Positions 2,889 to 37,057 of a DNA stretch of 64,000 bases are shown piece by piece; position 1 is the first letter of the stretch, and each line of letters begins with the position of its first letter. The notes beneath the pieces are model-generated. The model searched no databases and had not been told where the DNA came from. It saw nothing but the letters and a program-made list of their open reading frames with translations. The stretch is taken from positions 186,001 through 250,000 of IMG/VR virus record IMGVR_UViG_3300032053_000002. One strand, 5' to 3'. The position numbers and the translations under genes are program-made.

Positions 2889-3428
2889 TTATTCCTCTGA
2901 AAAGTATTCGTTAAATTTATAAAATGCAACATACACCATCGGATCCACTGCGGCTGATATATCAGACGTCCAATAACAATGAGCCATAGCTTCTAACTTA
3001 GTTCCATCTCCAGTTGCTTCTTTCTTTTCTATTTTAGTCAATTCAACCGTAAACAAATAATATACCGTATCAACCGATTTTGTTCCGCGACTAATTCCCA
3101 GAAAAACCATATCTTGCGGCTCAACTTCATACCCGGCTTCTTCTTTTAGTTCTCTTACTGCATCTAGTATTTTACTAGTAGAATCCTTTTCAACTTCGCC
3201 AGTGATACTGCTTATACTTTCGTTCATGCCCCACGGTGGCGTGACTTCACTCCTAAGTAAAAATTCCAGCAAATTAGTTTCTGGATTATACCGATACGGA
3301 AGTATAGCAACAATTTGACCATCGCAACGATCTTCGTGCAAATAGTCATAACCATTTACACCATGTTCTGGGTCTATCATTTTGCGTAGGGAAACCCATT
3401 CGGTTTTACATAATATTTTTTCTTCCAT
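2889..3428 (-). CDS. NUDIX hydrolase
   Basis: GEVE-x-DAVRELKEEAGY Nudix box. Confidence 0.8.
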   Translation of the reverse strand: MEEKILCKTEWVSLRKMIDPEHGVNGYDYLHEDRCDGQIVAILPYRYNPETNLLEFLLRSEVTPPWGMNESISSITGEVEKDSTSKILDAVRELKEEAGYEVEPQDMVFLGISRGTKSVDTVYYLFTVELTKIEKKEATGDGTKLEAMAHCYWTSDISAAVDPMVYVAFYKFNEYFSEE

Positions 3429-3658
3429 TATTTCATACTCCCTGAAAAGATTACGTGTTCTAATATAAAGTTTGGATTAAAGCTGCTTGATAAAATAAGA
3501 TTTTCAAAATTTTCGTTATTGCTAAAAATAAATAATGCGGCTTCGACGAATTTATTAAAAGTTAACTGTCTTTCTACCGATTTATACTTAAACTTACGGT
3601 ATAATTCCGAATTTACCTTTACTGAAGTAATTTGTGTGTATTCTAATTTATTTTCCAT
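3428..3658 (-). CDS. Small possible ribbon-helix-helix DNA-binding protein
   Basis: Start MENKLE after AGGAG; TSVKVNSELYRKFK strand-helix pattern. Confidence 0.45.
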   Translation of the reverse strand: MENKLEYTQITSVKVNSELYRKFKYKSVERQLTFNKFVEAALFIFSNNENFENLILSSSFNPNFILEHVIFSGSMK

Positions 3659-3719
3659 AATGATTTTACTCCTAAAAAATATACATATACATATAAATAT
3701 ATGGAAATTAAAAAAAACC

Positions 3720-5375
3720 TTACTCAATTTCAAAAAATTTATTTTTTATTTCTTCTTTAACTCTTACAAAATCATCATTTTTACCGCGAAGCCACCAGGT
3801 TTTCCAATCATACTTTAGTCTCTCTGTCGCAATCTTGTAATACTCGGGGTCTATTTCAGAACCAATATACGGTCGGTCTAATATTTTACACGCGATTAAA
3901 GTTGTTCCGCTTCCGGTAAAGGGATCATAAACCGTTCCACCATCGGGAGTTGAAAACATTTTTACCAGATAATGCATGAGTTCTGTTGGCTTTACTGTCG
4001 GGTGGTTATTTTTAACTTTTGATATACGATTTAATCCAATATGATTTTGTAGGTATTCTGTTTTACCTTCTTTTTCTGCGTATTGCGCGCCACCACTTCT
4101 CGCCATCAATTTATCATCCAATTTTTCCAATCCCAAGTTTCTTTCAGAAGTGGACGCTTTTGCGGTATAAAAGAAGCGAGATGCTCCACCTTCATCTCCC
4201 AAACCACCCGCGTTATCACCAAGTTTTTTATTATATTTACCGTAAACCAAATCTCCCAGTGCTCCCATGCTTTTTTCTCCTCGTCCCCCAGAAGATTTAC
4301 TTATTCCGCTCTGTTCGTCCAATATCTTTACAGGGCAATCATCTGAACATTGCCAGTCTTCTACTTCTTCCATACCGTTTTCGTCGGCATATCCAATCGG
4401 AGTTCCCAACTCACTTTCGTCGCAACCAGAATATCCGCCGCTATATTGATGACCGTGTTTCCAGTTTCCGCTTTTCGTTCCTGTTATGGCTTTTATTTTT
4501 TTCTTTCCGACCAATTTACACTCTGGAGCGTGACTTAAAACCAGATTGGCGGGAAAACGACCTTTTTCAGAAGCAGATGCGATATCGTTTTTAGTGGGAT
4601 CGAAACCGCAATTTTCGCTAGAAAAAACGCCTTTTTGTCGCGGTTGGCAAGAAGTTGTTTTTGTTTCTTCGTTATGACTTATCCGACTACCATCTATATT
4701 TATTCCAGCGACACCGTGAGTAAGCGCATTATTTACAAAGTTTTTATCAGTTGGTTTCATTCCGATAATAATCGGCTCGTAAGCAGGCTTGAGAGCAGTT
4801 CCCCAACCGTTCCATTTTTTTGCTTCGTCGGTAGCAGGACGTGTTATATCAACCATTCCGTTTTTTAGATGCATTTCTGAAACAAAATCTATGCCACTTT
4901 TTTTATTAGCAGTTCTTCTCTTTTTTCCATCAATAAACGGATTCCTTTGTCCAACAACTTCTCTTTCCGCATTAGCATTTTTATCTATTCCCTTGCTTAT
5001 ATCAAAACTTTTCGGAAATCCGCTTCCGTAAAGCCAGCAAATAGTATCGCGTATTTCAAATCCAACATCTTCCATTGCGGATGCCAATCGGTGTGATGTT
5101 CTCGTTCCACCAAATGCAACAAGAAACCCGCCGGGCTTTAAAACACGATAGGCTTCTTTTACCCATTCTAAATGCCACTTATACATTTTTTGACCGTCAT
5201 TGTCGCCTTCGAGTTGTTTATGCTGCGAATCAAAAGCGGCATTCATGAAATTGAGGAGATATGGTGGATCGGTTATTATGAAGGGAATAGAATTTTCTTC
5301 CATTTTTTGCATTGTCAGCTTGCAGTCTTCGTTATATAGCATATTTTTACTCAAAAAACTTATTTTCCTTTTCAT
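3720..5375 (-). CDS. DNA N6-adenine/N4-cytosine methyltransferase (beta class)
   Basis: DPPY catalytic motif at the N-terminus; HPTVKP and DPFTGSGTT SAM-binding motif at the C-terminus. Confidence 0.9.
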   Translation of the reverse strand: MKRKISFLSKNMLYNEDCKLTMQKMEENSIPFIITDPPYLLNFMNAAFDSQHKQLEGDNDGQKMYKWHLEWVKEAYRVLKPGGFLVAFGGTRTSHRLASAMEDVGFEIRDTICWLYGSGFPKSFDISKGIDKNANAEREVVGQRNPFIDGKKRRTANKKSGIDFVSEMHLKNGMVDITRPATDEAKKWNGWGTALKPAYEPIIIGMKPTDKNFVNNALTHGVAGINIDGSRISHNEETKTTSCQPRQKGVFSSENCGFDPTKNDIASASEKGRFPANLVLSHAPECKLVGKKKIKAITGTKSGNWKHGHQYSGGYSGCDESELGTPIGYADENGMEEVEDWQCSDDCPVKILDEQSGISKSSGGRGEKSMGALGDLVYGKYNKKLGDNAGGLGDEGGASRFFYTAKASTSERNLGLEKLDDKLMARSGGAQYAEKEGKTEYLQNHIGLNRISKVKNNHPTVKPTELMHYLVKMFSTPDGGTVYDPFTGSGTTLIACKILDRPYIGSEIDPEYYKIATERLKYDWKTWWLRGKNDDFVRVKEEIKNKFFEIE

Positions 5376-31959: not shown

Positions 31960-33011
31960 TATTTTTCTCCCTGGGTTTGTAATGCAAATATATTTAACTT
32001 ATTAAAATTAGTCAGCAACCACGAATTCAAATTAGGAATTGCGGAATACATCTTGTCCTCTAGAAACAAGCGTTTAAATTGAAACTGATTTATTATACTT
32101 ATCGGCTTATCAATAAGTTCCCGAATAATTGATTTACTAGTTCCGCTAATATTACTGGTACTGAGTTGCATTAATTTATAATTTCTAATCAGTTCATCTT
32201 TTTTTTCAGATAAAGTTTTAAGTGTCTTATTATTTTCCGACTCTTTTTGTATGTATTCCATGAAAGAATCAAAATCTATTTTTTTATCTTCGCAGATTAT
32301 TGCGACATTTTTATGCACCGTTTTTTCGCCGATTCCTTTTATACCTGGAACATTATCAGATTTATCCCCGGTAATAATTTTAAATAAAATATGATTGTCA
32401 GATATAACTCCGTAGTCTTCTTTCACCGAAGAAGGGGTATAGAGTTTTTTTCGGGTTGGACTCCAAACCGAAACCTTATCGTTTATTAACTGTATAAAAT
32501 CCGCGTCGGTCGACATTATAGTTACTTTTTCTTTGAATATATCATTCGCAAGATACGCCATCACATCGTCGCCTTCTACATTTTCTATCACAATAGTTGT
32601 TACCGGCAAAAAATCCAAATACTCCGCTATTCGTATTAATTGTCGCATCGCATTTTTATGTTCTTCATCCGCATCTTCAAAATCGTATGCACGATTCAAC
32701 CTTACTCGTAATCCTTTTCTGTTTTGCTTATATTCGGGGTATATTTTTCGCCTTCGTTGACTTCCACCTTTACCATCGAAAACAATTACACAACGAGTTG
32801 GGCTCAGCAATCGAACGGCATACGCGACAGTATTCAAAAACCCGACAATCCCTCCAATGTGAGTTCCGTCATCATTCATGGACGGATTGACCGAAAACGC
32901 TCTTAAATAAGAGTTGAGCCCATCGATTATTAAAACATTAGAATTTACGGTTTGCTCAACGGAATGTTCCTTTTGTATCTCTTTTAAGAGATTGTTAAAA
33001 TTTACGGTCAT
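31959..33011 (-). CDS. 5'-3' flap exonuclease (T4 RNase H-like)
   Basis: IIDGLN, VFDG, EGDD, STDADFIQ, GDKSDNVPGIKGIG. Confidence 0.92.
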   Translation of the reverse strand: MTVNFNNLLKEIQKEHSVEQTVNSNVLIIDGLNSYLRAFSVNPSMNDDGTHIGGIVGFLNTVAYAVRLLSPTRCVIVFDGKGGSQRRRKIYPEYKQNRKGLRVRLNRAYDFEDADEEHKNAMRQLIRIAEYLDFLPVTTIVIENVEGDDVMAYLANDIFKEKVTIMSTDADFIQLINDKVSVWSPTRKKLYTPSSVKEDYGVISDNHILFKIITGDKSDNVPGIKGIGEKTVHKNVAIICEDKKIDFDSFMEYIQKESENNKTLKTLSEKKDELIRNYKLMQLSTSNISGTSKSIIRELIDKPISIINQFQFKRLFLEDKMYSAIPNLNSWLLTNFNKLNIFALQTQGEK

Positions 33012-33562
33012 GGATTTAACACATCAACCAATTTCTCAGTCGCCTTTCCATAAATTTGTTTAGTCCAACCGTTTGTTTTTCCGCGATTGTTTCCTATTAA
33101 ACAACCTCGCTCTTCATTTTTTGCTTTTACTATATGAAGATAAAATTTCCCCTTTACTTTGCAATAAACAATGTCGCCTACTTTAACATCTTCCATTTTA
33201 ATCGGCACCAATCTAACAGGTTGTTTTGATTTAATTAGGGGAGTCATAGAATTTCCAGATTCTTTAACTATTATTGATTCTCCTTTTTGGAGCATTTCTA
33301 CTTTCCAATTATTCAACTCCGTTTCCTCCAATATATTATTTTTTTTATGTAATTCAAGTTCTTTTTCAAACTTTTTATCCGCCGCCCTAAAACAATGAAA
33401 GTTTTCGCATTGACTTCCAGGATCTCGTTCTTCTTTATGTTTTCTACACCAACCTTTTTCTATATAGCCACCAAACTCATTTCCGTTAAAATTATAATAA
33501 ATACAAAAATCGCAAACGGGCAAGCACTCATCGCAACAAGTTATTGGTAAATTACTTTTCAT
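33008..33562 (-). CDS. Cys-rich N-terminus fused to an S24/S26 peptidase-like domain
   Basis: SGNSMTPLI...VGDIV...YLHIVK. Confidence 0.6.
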   Translation of the reverse strand: MKSNLPITCCDECLPVCDFCIYYNFNGNEFGGYIEKGWCRKHKEERDPGSQCENFHCFRAADKKFEKELELHKKNNILEETELNNWKVEMLQKGESIIVKESGNSMTPLIKSKQPVRLVPIKMEDVKVGDIVYCKVKGKFYLHIVKAKNEERGCLIGNNRGKTNGWTKQIYGKATEKLVDVLNP

Positions 33563-33944
33563 ATTTTTCGACTATCCTCTGAATAAAAAGTTTTTTATTT
33601 GAAGTTTTTTTCCATTCACTTTGCCATATAATTTCTATATTAAATCCCATTTTCTTAGCGAAATCCATCTTTTCTTCGTCTTTTTCCCACTTTTCCCACG
33701 CATACTGATTTTTTATCTTATCATAGAAATCTGGCGAATATGTATTTTTATTATAATGCCATCTGTCGCCATAATACTCAACGATTAAATTTAAATCTTC
33801 AATATACATATCGTATGGAAAAGTGTTTAAATAAAATTCATTTCTGATTTTAAATCCACAAGATTTAAATTCTTCGGCTACCTGAATATGTCCCTGACTA
33901 TATCGACGGCGAAGTATTTTTTTCTTCTTATTGTTTTTAGGCAA
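33552..33944 (-). mobile_element. Vsr/EDxHD-like endonuclease
   Basis: PYDMYI..IVEYYGDRWH..KD..K..GF..IWQSEW. Confidence 0.72.
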
Positions 33945-33962: not shown

Positions 33963-34853
33963 CTATTCTTCGCCCACAACTTCATCCGTGTGAACTACCG
34001 TATCATCTTCGCTCAACCCGATAGTCGATTCAGAACGATATTTGGTGATTAAAATATCGCAAATCTTATTATAAACGAATTCTTTAAATTCGGGTTTGCT
34101 CTCCAATATAGATTTCCAGTTACTTAACTCGAATTTTACTTCTTCTCCATTTTGGTCATCCATCTTATATCCCGGGCTTGAACGTTTCGCAACGTCATAG
34201 TCTTTTAGAATGTTAAGCCAACTTTCGTAGTCGTCTATTCCGCGATCAAAATACATATCAAAGTCGGCAGTTCTAAATGGTGGTGCGACACGATTTTTAA
34301 TAACCTGCGCTCTTGCTTTAACTCCGAGTACCCTATCTTCACTTTTTGTTTTTTGTTTTATTTGCCCTATACATTTTAAGCGAAGTCGTACAGAAGAATG
34401 AAATGCTATTGCTTTTCCGCCAGAAGTTGTATTATGATTTAATCTTCCATTGGCATAATAATTTTCGCCATCAACTTCAATGTCAACTATATTTAATGGT
34501 TCGTCAGTAACCCACTTAAAATCTTCATGGCTTCTTAGCGTAATATCTTTATAGATTTTTTTTGTTTTAAATTCTTCTCCACCAAATGAATCCGCGGGTC
34601 TCCTCAACTCTATTATTCTATGATTTCCACTTCCTTTCAATTTTCCATCTGTATAATAATCTTCAACGGATTCTTTAACCAAAAAGGTTTTTACTTTCTT
34701 ATATTCATCTTTTCCAGTTTCCAGATTCTTTCCCAACACTTGAATATCAAAATCAGATAAATCATACTCGCATGGTGTCTTAAAATCATTTATACCGATA
34801 AATTTTTCAGCGAATTCTGCTAAAGTCAATTCTTCTTCAATGTATTTTTCCAT
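33963..34853 (-). CDS. uvsX: RecA/UvsX C-terminal half preceded by a 141-aa C-intein
   Basis: ...NGRLNHN|TTSGGKAIAFHSSVRL..IKNRVAPPFR; own GGAG SD. Confidence 0.9.
   Translation of the reverse strand: MEKYIEEELTLAEFAEKFIGINDFKTPCEYDLSDFDIQVLGKNLETGKDEYKKVKTFLVKESVEDYYTDGKLKGSGNHRIIELRRPADSFGGEEFKTKKIYKDITLRSHEDFKWVTDEPLNIVDIEVDGENYYANGRLNHNTTSGGKAIAFHSSVRLRLKCIGQIKQKTKSEDRVLGVKARAQVIKNRVAPPFRTADFDMYFDRGIDDYESWLNILKDYDVAKRSSPGYKMDDQNGEEVKFELSNWKSILESKPEFKEFVYNKICDILITKYRSESTIGLSEDDTVVHTDEVVGEE
34431..34853 (-). mobile_element. Split intein, C-part (141 aa)
   Basis: Block B-like KGSGNHRI; blocks F/G VDIEVDGENYYANGRLNHN, followed by Thr+1. Confidence 0.88.
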
Positions 34854-34855
34854 AA

Positions 34856-35287
34856 TTATTCTCCAAAAAATTCAAACGCAACTATTTTTTCGTTTTTTCG
34901 GATTCCCCGACCTTCTTGATTAAAATGATCACGTAAATACTCGTGACTTTTAAAAAATATCATTCTATTCTCTTTAAAAAAATCTTGATTCATAATAATT
35001 CTATAACTGTTTTTCGATTGTTCAAAAATATTTTTATCCGTTCTTTTTGATCTTAAATATTCCCTACACATTTTATATATTTCTCTATCATTATATTCTT
35101 TCGTATATCTCTCTATACTATCGCATAAACCATCCAATTCAAAAATAAAACTATGTATTAATATTTTTCTTTTTGATTCTAATAAATCTCTTTCTGATTC
35201 TTGATATCCTTTAAATTTCAATATAAAATTAATAACATCCGCAACATCGGTTTTTCTTTCTTCAATCATTTCTAAAATATAGTTCAT
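34856..35287 (-). CDS. Hypothetical protein lying between the two recA halves
   Basis: GAGGAG SD; no nuclease motif recognised. Confidence 0.65.
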   Translation of the reverse strand: MNYILEMIEERKTDVADVINFILKFKGYQESERDLLESKRKILIHSFIFELDGLCDSIERYTKEYNDREIYKMCREYLRSKRTDKNIFEQSKNSYRIIMNQDFFKENRMIFFKSHEYLRDHFNQEGRGIRKNEKIVAFEFFGE

Positions 35288-35389
35288 AATAAATTCTCCT
35301 CAATTATATTTTTCCATCAACTATTTTAATTTTCTTCATAAAATAAAACTCCTTTAATTATTTTTAATATTATCTAATATGAAGAATAT

Positions 35390-36130
35390 TTATTTTTCAT
35401 TCAATTTATATCTAATTTTTATTTTTGTTGTATATGGGTCAACACACCACGGGTCTCCGAACATTACTCCGAGTTTCTGCCTAAGTTGATTTGTCAGAAC
35501 AACGCATATCTTTTGTTTTCCGATTAGACGAGTTATTTTGCGAAGTGCTCTAGAAATGATAATCGCTTTATCGGTATTCCAACCTTCTTTAGAATAGTCG
35601 CCTTCGAGTTCTCCAGTAGTCGTCGCTGCGGCGACCGAATCCACAACAATCGTTACTAATTTATCTTTGTGCGCTTCACGAACTTCATTTATTATTTTAT
35701 CTATTGCGGAAAAAATTTGTTCGACCGTATCAAGTTGAGTATAGACCATTTTACTTATATCTATTCCGATTGCTCGTAAGAAATCCATACTCAATGCATT
35801 TTCAGTATCAATATAAACCGCAACGCCGTCTCTCTTTTGAGTATTCGCCAAAATGTGGGCGGCCAATAACGATTTTCCTGATGCTTCCAATCCATTTATT
35901 TCTATGATTCGCCCAACCGGAATACCACCGTGCGGACGATTAGAAATCGCCAAGTCCAGCATCGTACTTCCAGTAGAAATCCAATCGTCAACATCCGTAG
36001 GAGTTTCTTCTTCACCTATAAAATATGCCACTTTTCCTATGTCTTTAAATTCTTTATTTAAGTTCTCCGCCAACGAATGCGCTAAATCATTTTTGTCCGT
36101 TTTATTCTTTTCACTTTTATTTGTCGCCAT
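35390..36130 (-). CDS. uvsX: RecA/UvsX N-terminal half ending in an 18-aa N-intein
   Basis: GLEASGKS Walker A, YIDTE, VVDSVAA, TNQLR..GVMFGDPW|CVDPYTTKIKIRYKLNEK*. Confidence 0.92.
   Translation of the reverse strand: MATNKSEKNKTDKNDLAHSLAENLNKEFKDIGKVAYFIGEEETPTDVDDWISTGSTMLDLAISNRPHGGIPVGRIIEINGLEASGKSLLAAHILANTQKRDGVAVYIDTENALSMDFLRAIGIDISKMVYTQLDTVEQIFSAIDKIINEVREAHKDKLVTIVVDSVAAATTTGELEGDYSKEGWNTDKAIIISRALRKITRLIGKQKICVVLTNQLRQKLGVMFGDPWCVDPYTTKIKIRYKLNEK
35393..35446 (-). mobile_element. Split intein, N-part (18 aa)
   Basis: Block A-like CVDPYTTKI starting with Cys1. Confidence 0.82.
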
Positions 36131-36161
36131 AATTTTTCTCCATCTCCAATCAATAAAAATA

Positions 36162-36187
36162 AAATGAGCCGGAATCCCGGCTCATTT
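36162..36187 (-). terminator. Intrinsic terminator after ssb
   Basis: AAATGAGCCGG-AATC-CCGGCTCATTT, 11-bp stem with T-rich tail on the minus strand. Confidence 0.8.
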
Positions 36188-36205
36188 GTTAGTCGCAATT
36201 AAATG

Positions 36206-37057
36206 TTATTTCTCGTTAAAAACCGCATTAAACGCATCTTGTAATTCACCGGCATCTAGTGGTTTCGTAGATGGTTTCGGTGGTTTAGGCGGAGCGGGTT
36301 TTTTTGGAGCTTCTTCTTCTTCGACGACGCTGTCTGGGTCTGGAACTTCTTCTTCGTCTTCCGAATAACTGACAGCTTCCTTACCTTCTGGCGCATCTTC
36401 CGGATTCAGGTGTTTTTTGAGTATACTCGTCAACTCTTCATAGCTTTTTTCTTCGTACAATTCGGAAATGTCAATCTGAGAATCAACGATGATTTTCATA
36501 ATTTCCTTATCGTCCGTAATAGGCGTTTGGTTTACCCGAATACGCATATTTGTTTTCGGATAATCTTGACCTTCGGCTTTTTTGGAGCTGACAATTATAT
36601 CTCTACCGGATACTACGTCAGTAATATCACCGTATTCAGGATCGGCGATATGTGCTAACAGTTCTTCGTATACCGTTTTACCGAATCCCCAGAACTTAAC
36701 TCCCTCTTGTTCTTTTTTACGAATAATAATCGGAACAAAAGTTCTCAGTTTAGGTTCTAACTTTTTACCCATCTTCCAGTTTTCCTTGTCGCCAGAAGTT
36801 TTCAACTTTTGTGCGAATTCCATTATCGGGTCAGGACGACCAAATGAAACGGGCGACAAAAGTGTTTTACCGGCGAGTTCATAATGGAAATACAGTTCGA
36901 TAAAAGGATTTTCGCGATTGAATTTGTACGGCACAATTCGTATAACCTGTTCTTGTACTGTAGGCTTCCAAATCATATCAGATTTACGATTTGTTTTCTT
37001 TAAAGCGTCCAGACGTTGCTTGATTGCATCGATGTTGATGCCTTTTTGAGGTGACAT
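36206..37057 (-). CDS. Single-stranded DNA-binding protein (gp32-like)
   Basis: WKP..RIVP, FWGFGKTVY, YGDITD..GRD, acidic/Pro-rich tail; start MSPQ after AAGGAG. Confidence 0.82.
   Translation of the reverse strand: MSPQKGINIDAIKQRLDALKKTNRKSDMIWKPTVQEQVIRIVPYKFNRENPFIELYFHYELAGKTLLSPVSFGRPDPIMEFAQKLKTSGDKENWKMGKKLEPKLRTFVPIIIRKKEQEGVKFWGFGKTVYEELLAHIADPEYGDITDVVSGRDIIVSSKKAEGQDYPKTNMRIRVNQTPITDDKEIMKIIVDSQIDISELYEEKSYEELTSILKKHLNPEDAPEGKEAVSYSEDEEEVPDPDSVVEEEEAPKKPAPPKPPKPSTKPLDAGELQDAFNAVFNEK

Follow-up and report, generated by a model that had tools for sequence, protein, structure and literature searches.

Naturally split inteins with atypical break points have an N-terminal piece (IntN) of 15–37 amino acids (aa) and are interrupted at one of two positions, S1, right after strand 2 (VidaL and PolB16), or S2, after helix 1 (AceL TerL and GOS TerL) (PMC13014065). 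Split inteins with so short an N-piece allow a synthetic peptide to be ligated onto a recombinant protein, and few natural ones have been characterised (VidaL, PolB16, AceL TerL and GOS TerL). A related gene organisation is that of fractured genes (gp41, NrdJ, IMPDH and others), which, in the passages of Dassa 2009 (PMC2677866) considered here, consist of an N-half, a free-standing endonuclease gene and a C-half on one strand, occur mainly in phages and in half of the cases include a Vsr-like endonuclease. The L2 loop of RecA is itself known to be invaded, by inteins such as that of M. leprae RecA and by the group I intron in recA of phage 0305phi8-36, whose Vsr-like EDxHD endonuclease, I-Bth0305I, reads the G-D-P codons of L2 (PMC3239194). 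Here we describe a 64,000-nucleotide (nt) stretch, hereafter the window, of IMG/VR UViG 3300032053_000002 (metagenomic contig Ga0315284_10000017, 292,723 bp), in which the RecA of a giant (jumbo) phage is very probably interrupted in L2 by a naturally split class 1 intein and joined by trans-splicing.

The RecA halves and the intein pieces

The N-half open reading frame (ORF; 35390..36130, on the minus strand like all features of the RecA locus, with positions given for the whole window) encodes 246 aa, comprising RecA residues 1–228 and an 18-residue intein start. The N-extein (35447..36130) carries the Walker A motif GLEASGKS and ends ...GVMFGDPW in the L2 loop; it is followed directly by IntN (35393..35446; 18 aa, CVDPYTTKIKIRYKLNEK) and a stop codon (35390-35392). 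Next come a 102-nt spacer (35288..35389), which holds the Shine-Dalgarno sequence GAGGAG of an orphan ORF of 143 aa (34856..35287, minus strand), and then the C-half ORF (33963..34853), which encodes 296 aa made up of the 141-residue remainder of the intein and the last 155 RecA residues. The C-terminal intein piece (IntC; 34431..34853) is without RecA similarity and runs from MEKYIEEELTLAEF through GSGNH (block B) and IVDIEV (block F) to ANGRLNHN (block G), its end reading ...YYANGRLNHN before the C-extein (33966..34430; stop codon 33963-33965) takes up at TTSGGKAIAF with residues 229–383 of the predicted spliced product. The two halves are thereby separated by 536 nt with a separate ORF inside; both have ribosome-binding sites, and the C-half has its own ATG seven bases 3' of GGAGA.

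In profile comparisons the two RecA pieces abut exactly, the N-half covering positions 5-199 of Pfam RecA PF00154 (E 1.4e-44) and the C-half, from residue 139, positions 198-262 (E 2.2e-14). They also adjoin on the TIGR profile (TIGR02012). The N-half matches PHROG 97, UvsX-like recombinase (E 1.8e-53), and the C-half aligns with E. coli RecA structures from NPETTTGG onward (E down to 7e-14), placing the break in L2, the DNA-binding loop, with the counterparts of E. coli E207 and T208 on either side. The features of RecA-family membership, that is the RecA core, Walker A, the L2 loop and the C-terminal domain, are all present across the pair. The junction was examined further in the best 120 of the thousands of relatives returned by a search with the N-half. 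Uninterrupted RecA accounted for 93 of these, at 61-73% identity and nearly all of 364-395 aa, and 82 of the 93 carry in L2 the sequence FGDPWTTSGG, which is exactly that of the joined window exteins; another 25 of the 120 were truncated N-halves with a short CVDP... tail at the end. Removal of the intein restores the conserved L2 sequence FGDPW-TTSGG in frame (the hyphen marks the splice junction, as in the junction sequences quoted below), and the predicted spliced RecA of 228 + 155 = 383 aa falls in the size range of the uninterrupted homologues, with a predicted tryptic junction peptide LGVMFGDPWTTSGGK. The RecA/intein arrangement is confirmed and goes far beyond chance.

The identification of the insert as a class 1 intein (HINT domain) is supported by its catalytic residues, its contiguous relatives and its predicted fold. 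Single-sequence searches were weak: phmmer of IntC against PDB chains gave no match, and Pfam and NCBIfam scans returned sub-threshold intein matches only, so the identity was taken from a family profile and from structure prediction. A search with the IntC part collected 102 metagenomic protein clusters, all with RecA C-termini, under a length filter that under-samples contiguous forms. The resulting family profile matches gp41-1 (E 0.014) and, more strongly, the Spl DnaX mini-intein (E 1.2e-4). An AlphaFold model of a contiguous relative (P0022:222-356) had a mean predicted local distance difference test (pLDDT) score of 97.2 and a predicted template modelling (pTM) score of 0.89, and the top 46 PDB entries that Foldseek returned for it were all inteins or related HINT domains, with template modelling (TM) scores up to 0.78 and including the Pho RadA, Aes123 PolB1, TFIIB and Mtu RecA inteins. 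The window IntC modelled alone reached pLDDT 90.8 and its best 33 PDB matches were likewise all inteins or HINT domains; its residues 1-10 were unstructured, as expected for a strand without its partner.

The residues of class 1 inteins are found throughout, namely Cys1, block B His, block F Asp, block G His-Asn and Thr+1. Cys1 lies directly after ...FGDPW in the window and occurs in 34 of 34 distinct IntN of the family. The block B His, block F Asp and terminal His-Asn are invariant in alignments of 50 and 48 members, and the terminal Asn is followed by Thr in 101 of 102 family members, the remaining one having Ser.

The window encodes two precursors which together supply a complete HINT domain with every class 1 catalytic position. 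This agrees with the preliminary description of the locus, drawn from the letters alone, which had proposed a fractured RecA, an 18-aa IntN after ...GVMFGDPW followed by a stop, a 141-aa IntC with SGNH and ...YYANGRLNHN running into TTSGGKAIAF, a separate C-half gene with its own Shine-Dalgarno sequence, Thr+1, and an L2 loop restored by the joined exteins; each sequence is present as quoted. The intein-profile check that it had named gave a divided answer, curated profiles staying below cut-off and the family profile matching the Spl DnaX and gp41-1 inteins. Its account of the locus as two genes holds for both halves but overlooked the 143-aa ORF between them, and it left out the minus strand, a 130-aa Vsr-like ORF downstream and the endonuclease of the nearest relative, L043.

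Predicted splicing and its alternatives

Association of the two pieces, the splicing chemistry and its necessity are here inferred from established intein chemistry. The precursors, RecA(1-228)-IntN(18 aa) and IntC(141 aa)-RecA(229-383), would be translated separately, probably from one transcript. A strong terminator-like hairpin of 11 pairs, 6 of them G-C, with a T-run (36162-36187, minus strand) lies between a gp32-like gene and the RecA N-half and nothing comparable lies between the halves, where no promoter or terminator signal stood above chance; the halves therefore probably share a transcript. IntN would give the first two HINT strands and dock on the otherwise complete IntC. An N-S shift at Cys1 would then form a thioester, Thr+1 would attack it, Asn141 of IntC would cyclise, and an O-N shift would leave a W228-T229 peptide bond (...FGDPW-TTSGG...) in a RecA of 383 aa. 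On the same footing, and in line with the preliminary description, the recombinase would be made only by trans-splicing; the jumbo-phage recombinase apparently depends on protein ligation.

Several observations weigh against this interpretation. Splicing by the RecA halves is itself a prediction, and the finding of no second RecA gene applies to the 64-kb window, which covers 64 of 293 kb. The intein profile TIGR01443 gave 12.6 bits on the window IntC against a cut-off of 15.6, and PF14890 (Intein_splicing) gave at most 18.5 bits versus 35.8 on contiguous relatives and no match on the window IntC; the family is divergent in sequence. Block B of the window reads S-G-N-H, with Ser in place of the Thr of T-x-x-H found in most relatives, the His being kept. 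The window IntC also has a 17-aa insert (RRPADSFGGEEFKTKK) after block B (IntC residues about 83-100; window 34550-34610, minus strand), which is common only to the nearest relative P0002 and is the sole low-confidence stretch of the IntC model (pLDDT 63-73).

Such irregularities could mark a decaying relic, an intein broken by a mobile element with its halves non-functional and host RecA or another recombinase in use. This was weighed using the nearest relative, L043, from a sister sample (window 33963-36400 compared with L043:420-3557). Nucleotide identity is 99.3% in the upstream region, 97.7% in the N-extein and 98.5% in the C-extein, and falls to 83% in IntN, 69% in the 143-aa ORF and 80% in IntC. 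This mosaic indicates a history of the intein cassette separate from that of the host gene, as expected of a mobile element, and the cassette may have been exchanged or may be evolving apart from the RecA gene. Within it the orphan ORF appears weakly constrained, with a ratio of nonsynonymous to synonymous substitution rates (dN/dS) of 0.63, which would fit decay, as would the loss of the endonuclease and the unusual IntC insert. Against decay, IntC shows a dN/dS of 0.14 at a dS of 0.95, indicating purifying selection on the protein, the whole N-half ORF (N-extein plus IntN) has a dN/dS of 0.02, and the C-extein is 100% identical in amino acids. Both halves are moreover intact ORFs with ribosome-binding sites, all catalytic residues are retained and the same split form occurs in more than 90 protein clusters, which makes a relic very improbable.

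Alternatively, the intein pieces might hold the two halves together non-covalently, the complex being functional unspliced. Split-intein pieces bind tightly and a complex would form in any case, and a working non-covalent assembly is described for a fragmented phage ribonucleotide reductase (PMC3045599). The 159-residue domain would however stay in L2, where the filament makes contact with DNA (PMC3239194), and the invariance of the nucleophiles and of the terminal Asn would be unneeded. Since a domain left in L2 would sit at the RecA-DNA contact, splicing rather than mere association is likely, and function by association we consider very improbable. An assembly or sequencing artefact, which the preliminary description had named as a possible refutation, or joining at the RNA level by an intron or translational bypass, is barely credible, given the 536 nt and separate ORF between the halves, the recurrence of the split arrangement in about 25 IMG/VR loci and, for the C-half together with the ORF upstream of it, in three additional independent assemblies (JGI and ENA), which excludes an assembly error, and no sign of RNA-level joining in the form of an Rfam family at threshold anywhere in the 64-kb window (group I/II introns included) or an unusual fold of the spacer 35288..35389, which folds no better than shuffled sequence (z -0.09).

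Split site and comparison with described systems

In alignments with contiguous relatives the window IntN corresponds to their residues 1-15, and the strand that follows is the first of IntC. In the P0022 model residues 1-15 include a strand (8-13) and a turn (14-15), after which come a further strand (16-21) and the first helix (22-30). On this model the window intein is an S1 split, broken directly after strand 2 and before helix 1, which accounts for a very short IntN. The term "atypically split" used in the preliminary description is borne out by a break in the turn between strands 8-13 and 16-21, and the two separately translated pieces include an IntN whose 18 aa fall within the published 15-37-aa range. 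Family IntN are 15-28 aa long, most commonly 15, and the first 13 residues, CVDPxTTK[IV]KIRY, are almost invariant among 34 distinct sequences, the last four residues of the window IntN, LNEK, forming a variable tail.

Among described inteins, VidaL, which has a 16-aa IntN (Neugebauer 2017, Burton 2020, as cited in PMC13014065), is similar in being natural, cysteine-dependent, with Cys1, split at S1 and short enough in its IntN for peptide synthesis (PMC13014065). Its sequence is unrelated, however: phmmer and the family profile miss all its PDB chains, and the published sequence reads CLPKEAVVQIRLTKG... and ...IVSHN-SGK, with Ser+1 where the window intein has Thr+1. Identity of the window intein with VidaL is thus ruled out. 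The PolB16 OarG intein shares the S1 split, a 15-aa IntN (the commonest length in the RecA intein family), a metagenomic origin and a replication gene as host, but it is a cysteine-independent Ser1/Ser+1 intein with a dispensable block B His in a PolB polymerase (PMC10189870), whereas the window intein is Cys1/Thr+1 and the block B His is invariant in its family. The AceL TerL and GOS TerL inteins are likewise natural, phage-derived and short in IntN (25 and 37 aa), but are split at S2, one structural element later, and interrupt the terminase large subunit (PMC13014065). Inteins of the Dassa survey such as Gp41-1 differ in that they are described as having the canonical split, their IntN being about 100 aa long. 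In the passages of that survey considered here RecA figures only as a group I intron host and UvsX only as a neighbouring gene (PMC2677866).

The insertion site is shared more widely than the type of element. The M. leprae RecA intein and the 0305phi8-36 intron use the same L2 hot spot (PMC3239194), the former being a contiguous bacterial intein and the latter an RNA intron, whereas the window element is a split intein. The G-D-P residues read by I-Bth0305I immediately precede the window intein. The M. leprae intein site probably lies three residues upstream of the window site. L2 is accordingly a hot spot common to all three, with the split intein as the third mobile-element type at this position.

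The components have each been published, namely natural S1-split inteins whose N-pieces measure 15-16 aa (VidaL and PolB16), fractured phage genes that include Vsr-like endonucleases, and the invasion of L2 by inteins and introns. In view of the first two, the preliminary description rated the newness of the locus too high. No paper that connects phage RecA or UvsX to an intein in this manner was found in a search of open papers, outside which lay Neugebauer 2017, Burton 2020, Bachmann 2015 and Sekar 2022. For protein engineers the RecA split intein has practical use, and it makes a neat case in evolution; it involves no new principle. Its Cys1/Thr+1 pair differs from those of the two S1-split inteins compared, VidaL (Cys1/Ser+1) and PolB16 (Ser1/Ser+1), and would leave Thr, not Cys or Ser, at the junction; natural variants in the family number in the dozens and share a 13-residue N-core that hardly varies, and contiguous counterparts are available for comparison. 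Neugebauer et al. reportedly named, in 2017, a split intein "VidaL UvsX-2" whose N-piece has 15 aa, so that a UvsX intein of the kind seen here may already have been described.

Endonuclease genes and the wider intein family

In most related split loci the halves are separated by a gap of 870-1190 nt with one conserved ORF of 285-365 aa, the C-terminus of which matches the DUF559, Vsr and MTES_1575 models. These relatives share the layout of the fractured genes described in the cited passages of Dassa 2009 (PMC2677866), with the Vsr-like ORF in the place of the free-standing endonuclease. A profile of the gap ORFs, which have an invariant D...E..GD.WH.N pattern, matches Vsr endonuclease structures (Vsr, E 0.005); it reached only Vsr itself and gave no direct match to the I-Bth0305I structure. 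L043 has an endonuclease ORF of 251 aa (E 1.6e-99 against the endonuclease family profile), which starts at the very end of IntN; at this point a blastn breakpoint separates 706 nt in L043 from 62 nt in the window. The fractured-gene layout is thus seen in L043 and in most relatives, and the window has no endonuclease between its halves.

The split state most likely arose through a Vsr-like free-standing homing endonuclease gene sitting in the intein turn. The gene remains in most relatives and is missing from the window phage, which has kept the orphan ORF instead. This 143-aa ORF has a strong Shine-Dalgarno sequence (GAGGAG) and a stop 2 nt before the C-half ATG. It gave no match in Pfam, NCBIfam or PHROGs and no nuclease signature. 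In 1.84 billion representatives it matched just 2, including its one clear relative, the 138-aa ORF that L043 has at the same place (49% identity), and none outside this lineage; its Atlas model has a pLDDT of 0.41. The ORF also aligned weakly with the central part of the endonuclease profile, at 7.8 bits (E 0.03 among 376 ORFs), which is not significant, and kinship with the endonuclease on this basis was set aside. An 11-codon mini-ORF (MKKIKIVDGKI) preceded by AAAGGAG in the spacer 35288-35389 is probably a chance occurrence in AT-rich DNA.

Downstream of the C-half by 19 nt, a 130-aa ORF with a TTG start (33552..33944, minus strand) is homologous to the Vsr-like (EDxHD-type) nuclease domain of the endonucleases that relatives carry between the halves. 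It matches positions 263-343 of the endonuclease profile (E 5e-14), PHROG 22677 (E 6.5e-12) and, below the family cut-off, Pfam MTES_1575 (E 6.8e-6), and is without the N-terminal two thirds of the relatives' endonucleases. The ORF may encode a homing endonuclease in minimal or degenerate form.

The intein family had no match among 50,697 deposited phage genomes. Most of the 102 clusters are of 265-310 aa and so represent split members, and a few of 504-515 aa carry the same element uninterrupted at the same site. Contiguous members at this site (P0022, P0056, P0095 and P0100) read ...FGD(K/P)(Y/W)-CVDPYTTK...NGRLNHN-TTSGG. At four split loci (L027, L028, L044 and L045) only 12-106 nt and no intervening gene lie between the halves, and since these are without an endonuclease the split state persists by itself. 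The split intein of the window has likewise persisted after loss of the homing endonuclease.

On a tree of 99 intein parts (127 columns) the six contiguous forms occur at dispersed points among split members, and well-supported branches force at least four changes of state. The contiguous P0011 (L047:10-1092) reads ...KIKIRK followed by MNYIEEE..., so that it retains internally the initiator Met and opening residues of P0009 and P0010, its split neighbours, and the gap of the P0009 locus (L046:3001-3852) holds only a decayed endonuclease remnant (C-terminus). The comparison suggests that P0011 arose when a split intein was fused again in frame. Together with the tree it suggests that the intein has passed repeatedly from one state to the other, split or contiguous, at one position; with 127 columns and under-sampled contiguous forms, this is a lead, not a result. 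An undescribed family that switches repeatedly between contiguous and S1-split states through a Vsr-like homing endonuclease lodging in the first hairpin turn of the intein, not at the canonical endonuclease site, is a possibility that we put forward tentatively. If the switching is real, the window allele would be the state after endonuclease loss that is still split, and the family would provide a natural series of matched cis/trans pairs with a 13-residue IntN core and Cys1/Thr+1.

A second, different intein was observed seven residues upstream in the same L2 loop of some relatives (...RLG-C...HN-TSFGDPY-C...). It is contiguous in L013 (about 3300-3870) and S1-split in L009 (about 1700-1771) and P0059:1-144, with a 16-aa N-piece, CVNPETTDVIFRTQIN, so that in RecA genes of the L013/L009/P0059 type two inteins lie within seven residues of each other.

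The 64-kb window contains no tRNA genes and gave no Rfam matches, and its large ORFs are almost all encoded on the minus strand. The neighbours of the RecA locus form a replication module with a gp32-like single-stranded DNA-binding protein, a 5'-3' exonuclease (FEN), a DnaB-type helicase, a weak PolA match and ribonucleotide reductase. A 184-aa ORF adjacent to the recombinase genes (33008-33562, minus strand) is Cys-rich at its N-terminus and weakly matches the S24 (LexA/UmuD-like) peptidases (E 3.2e-5).

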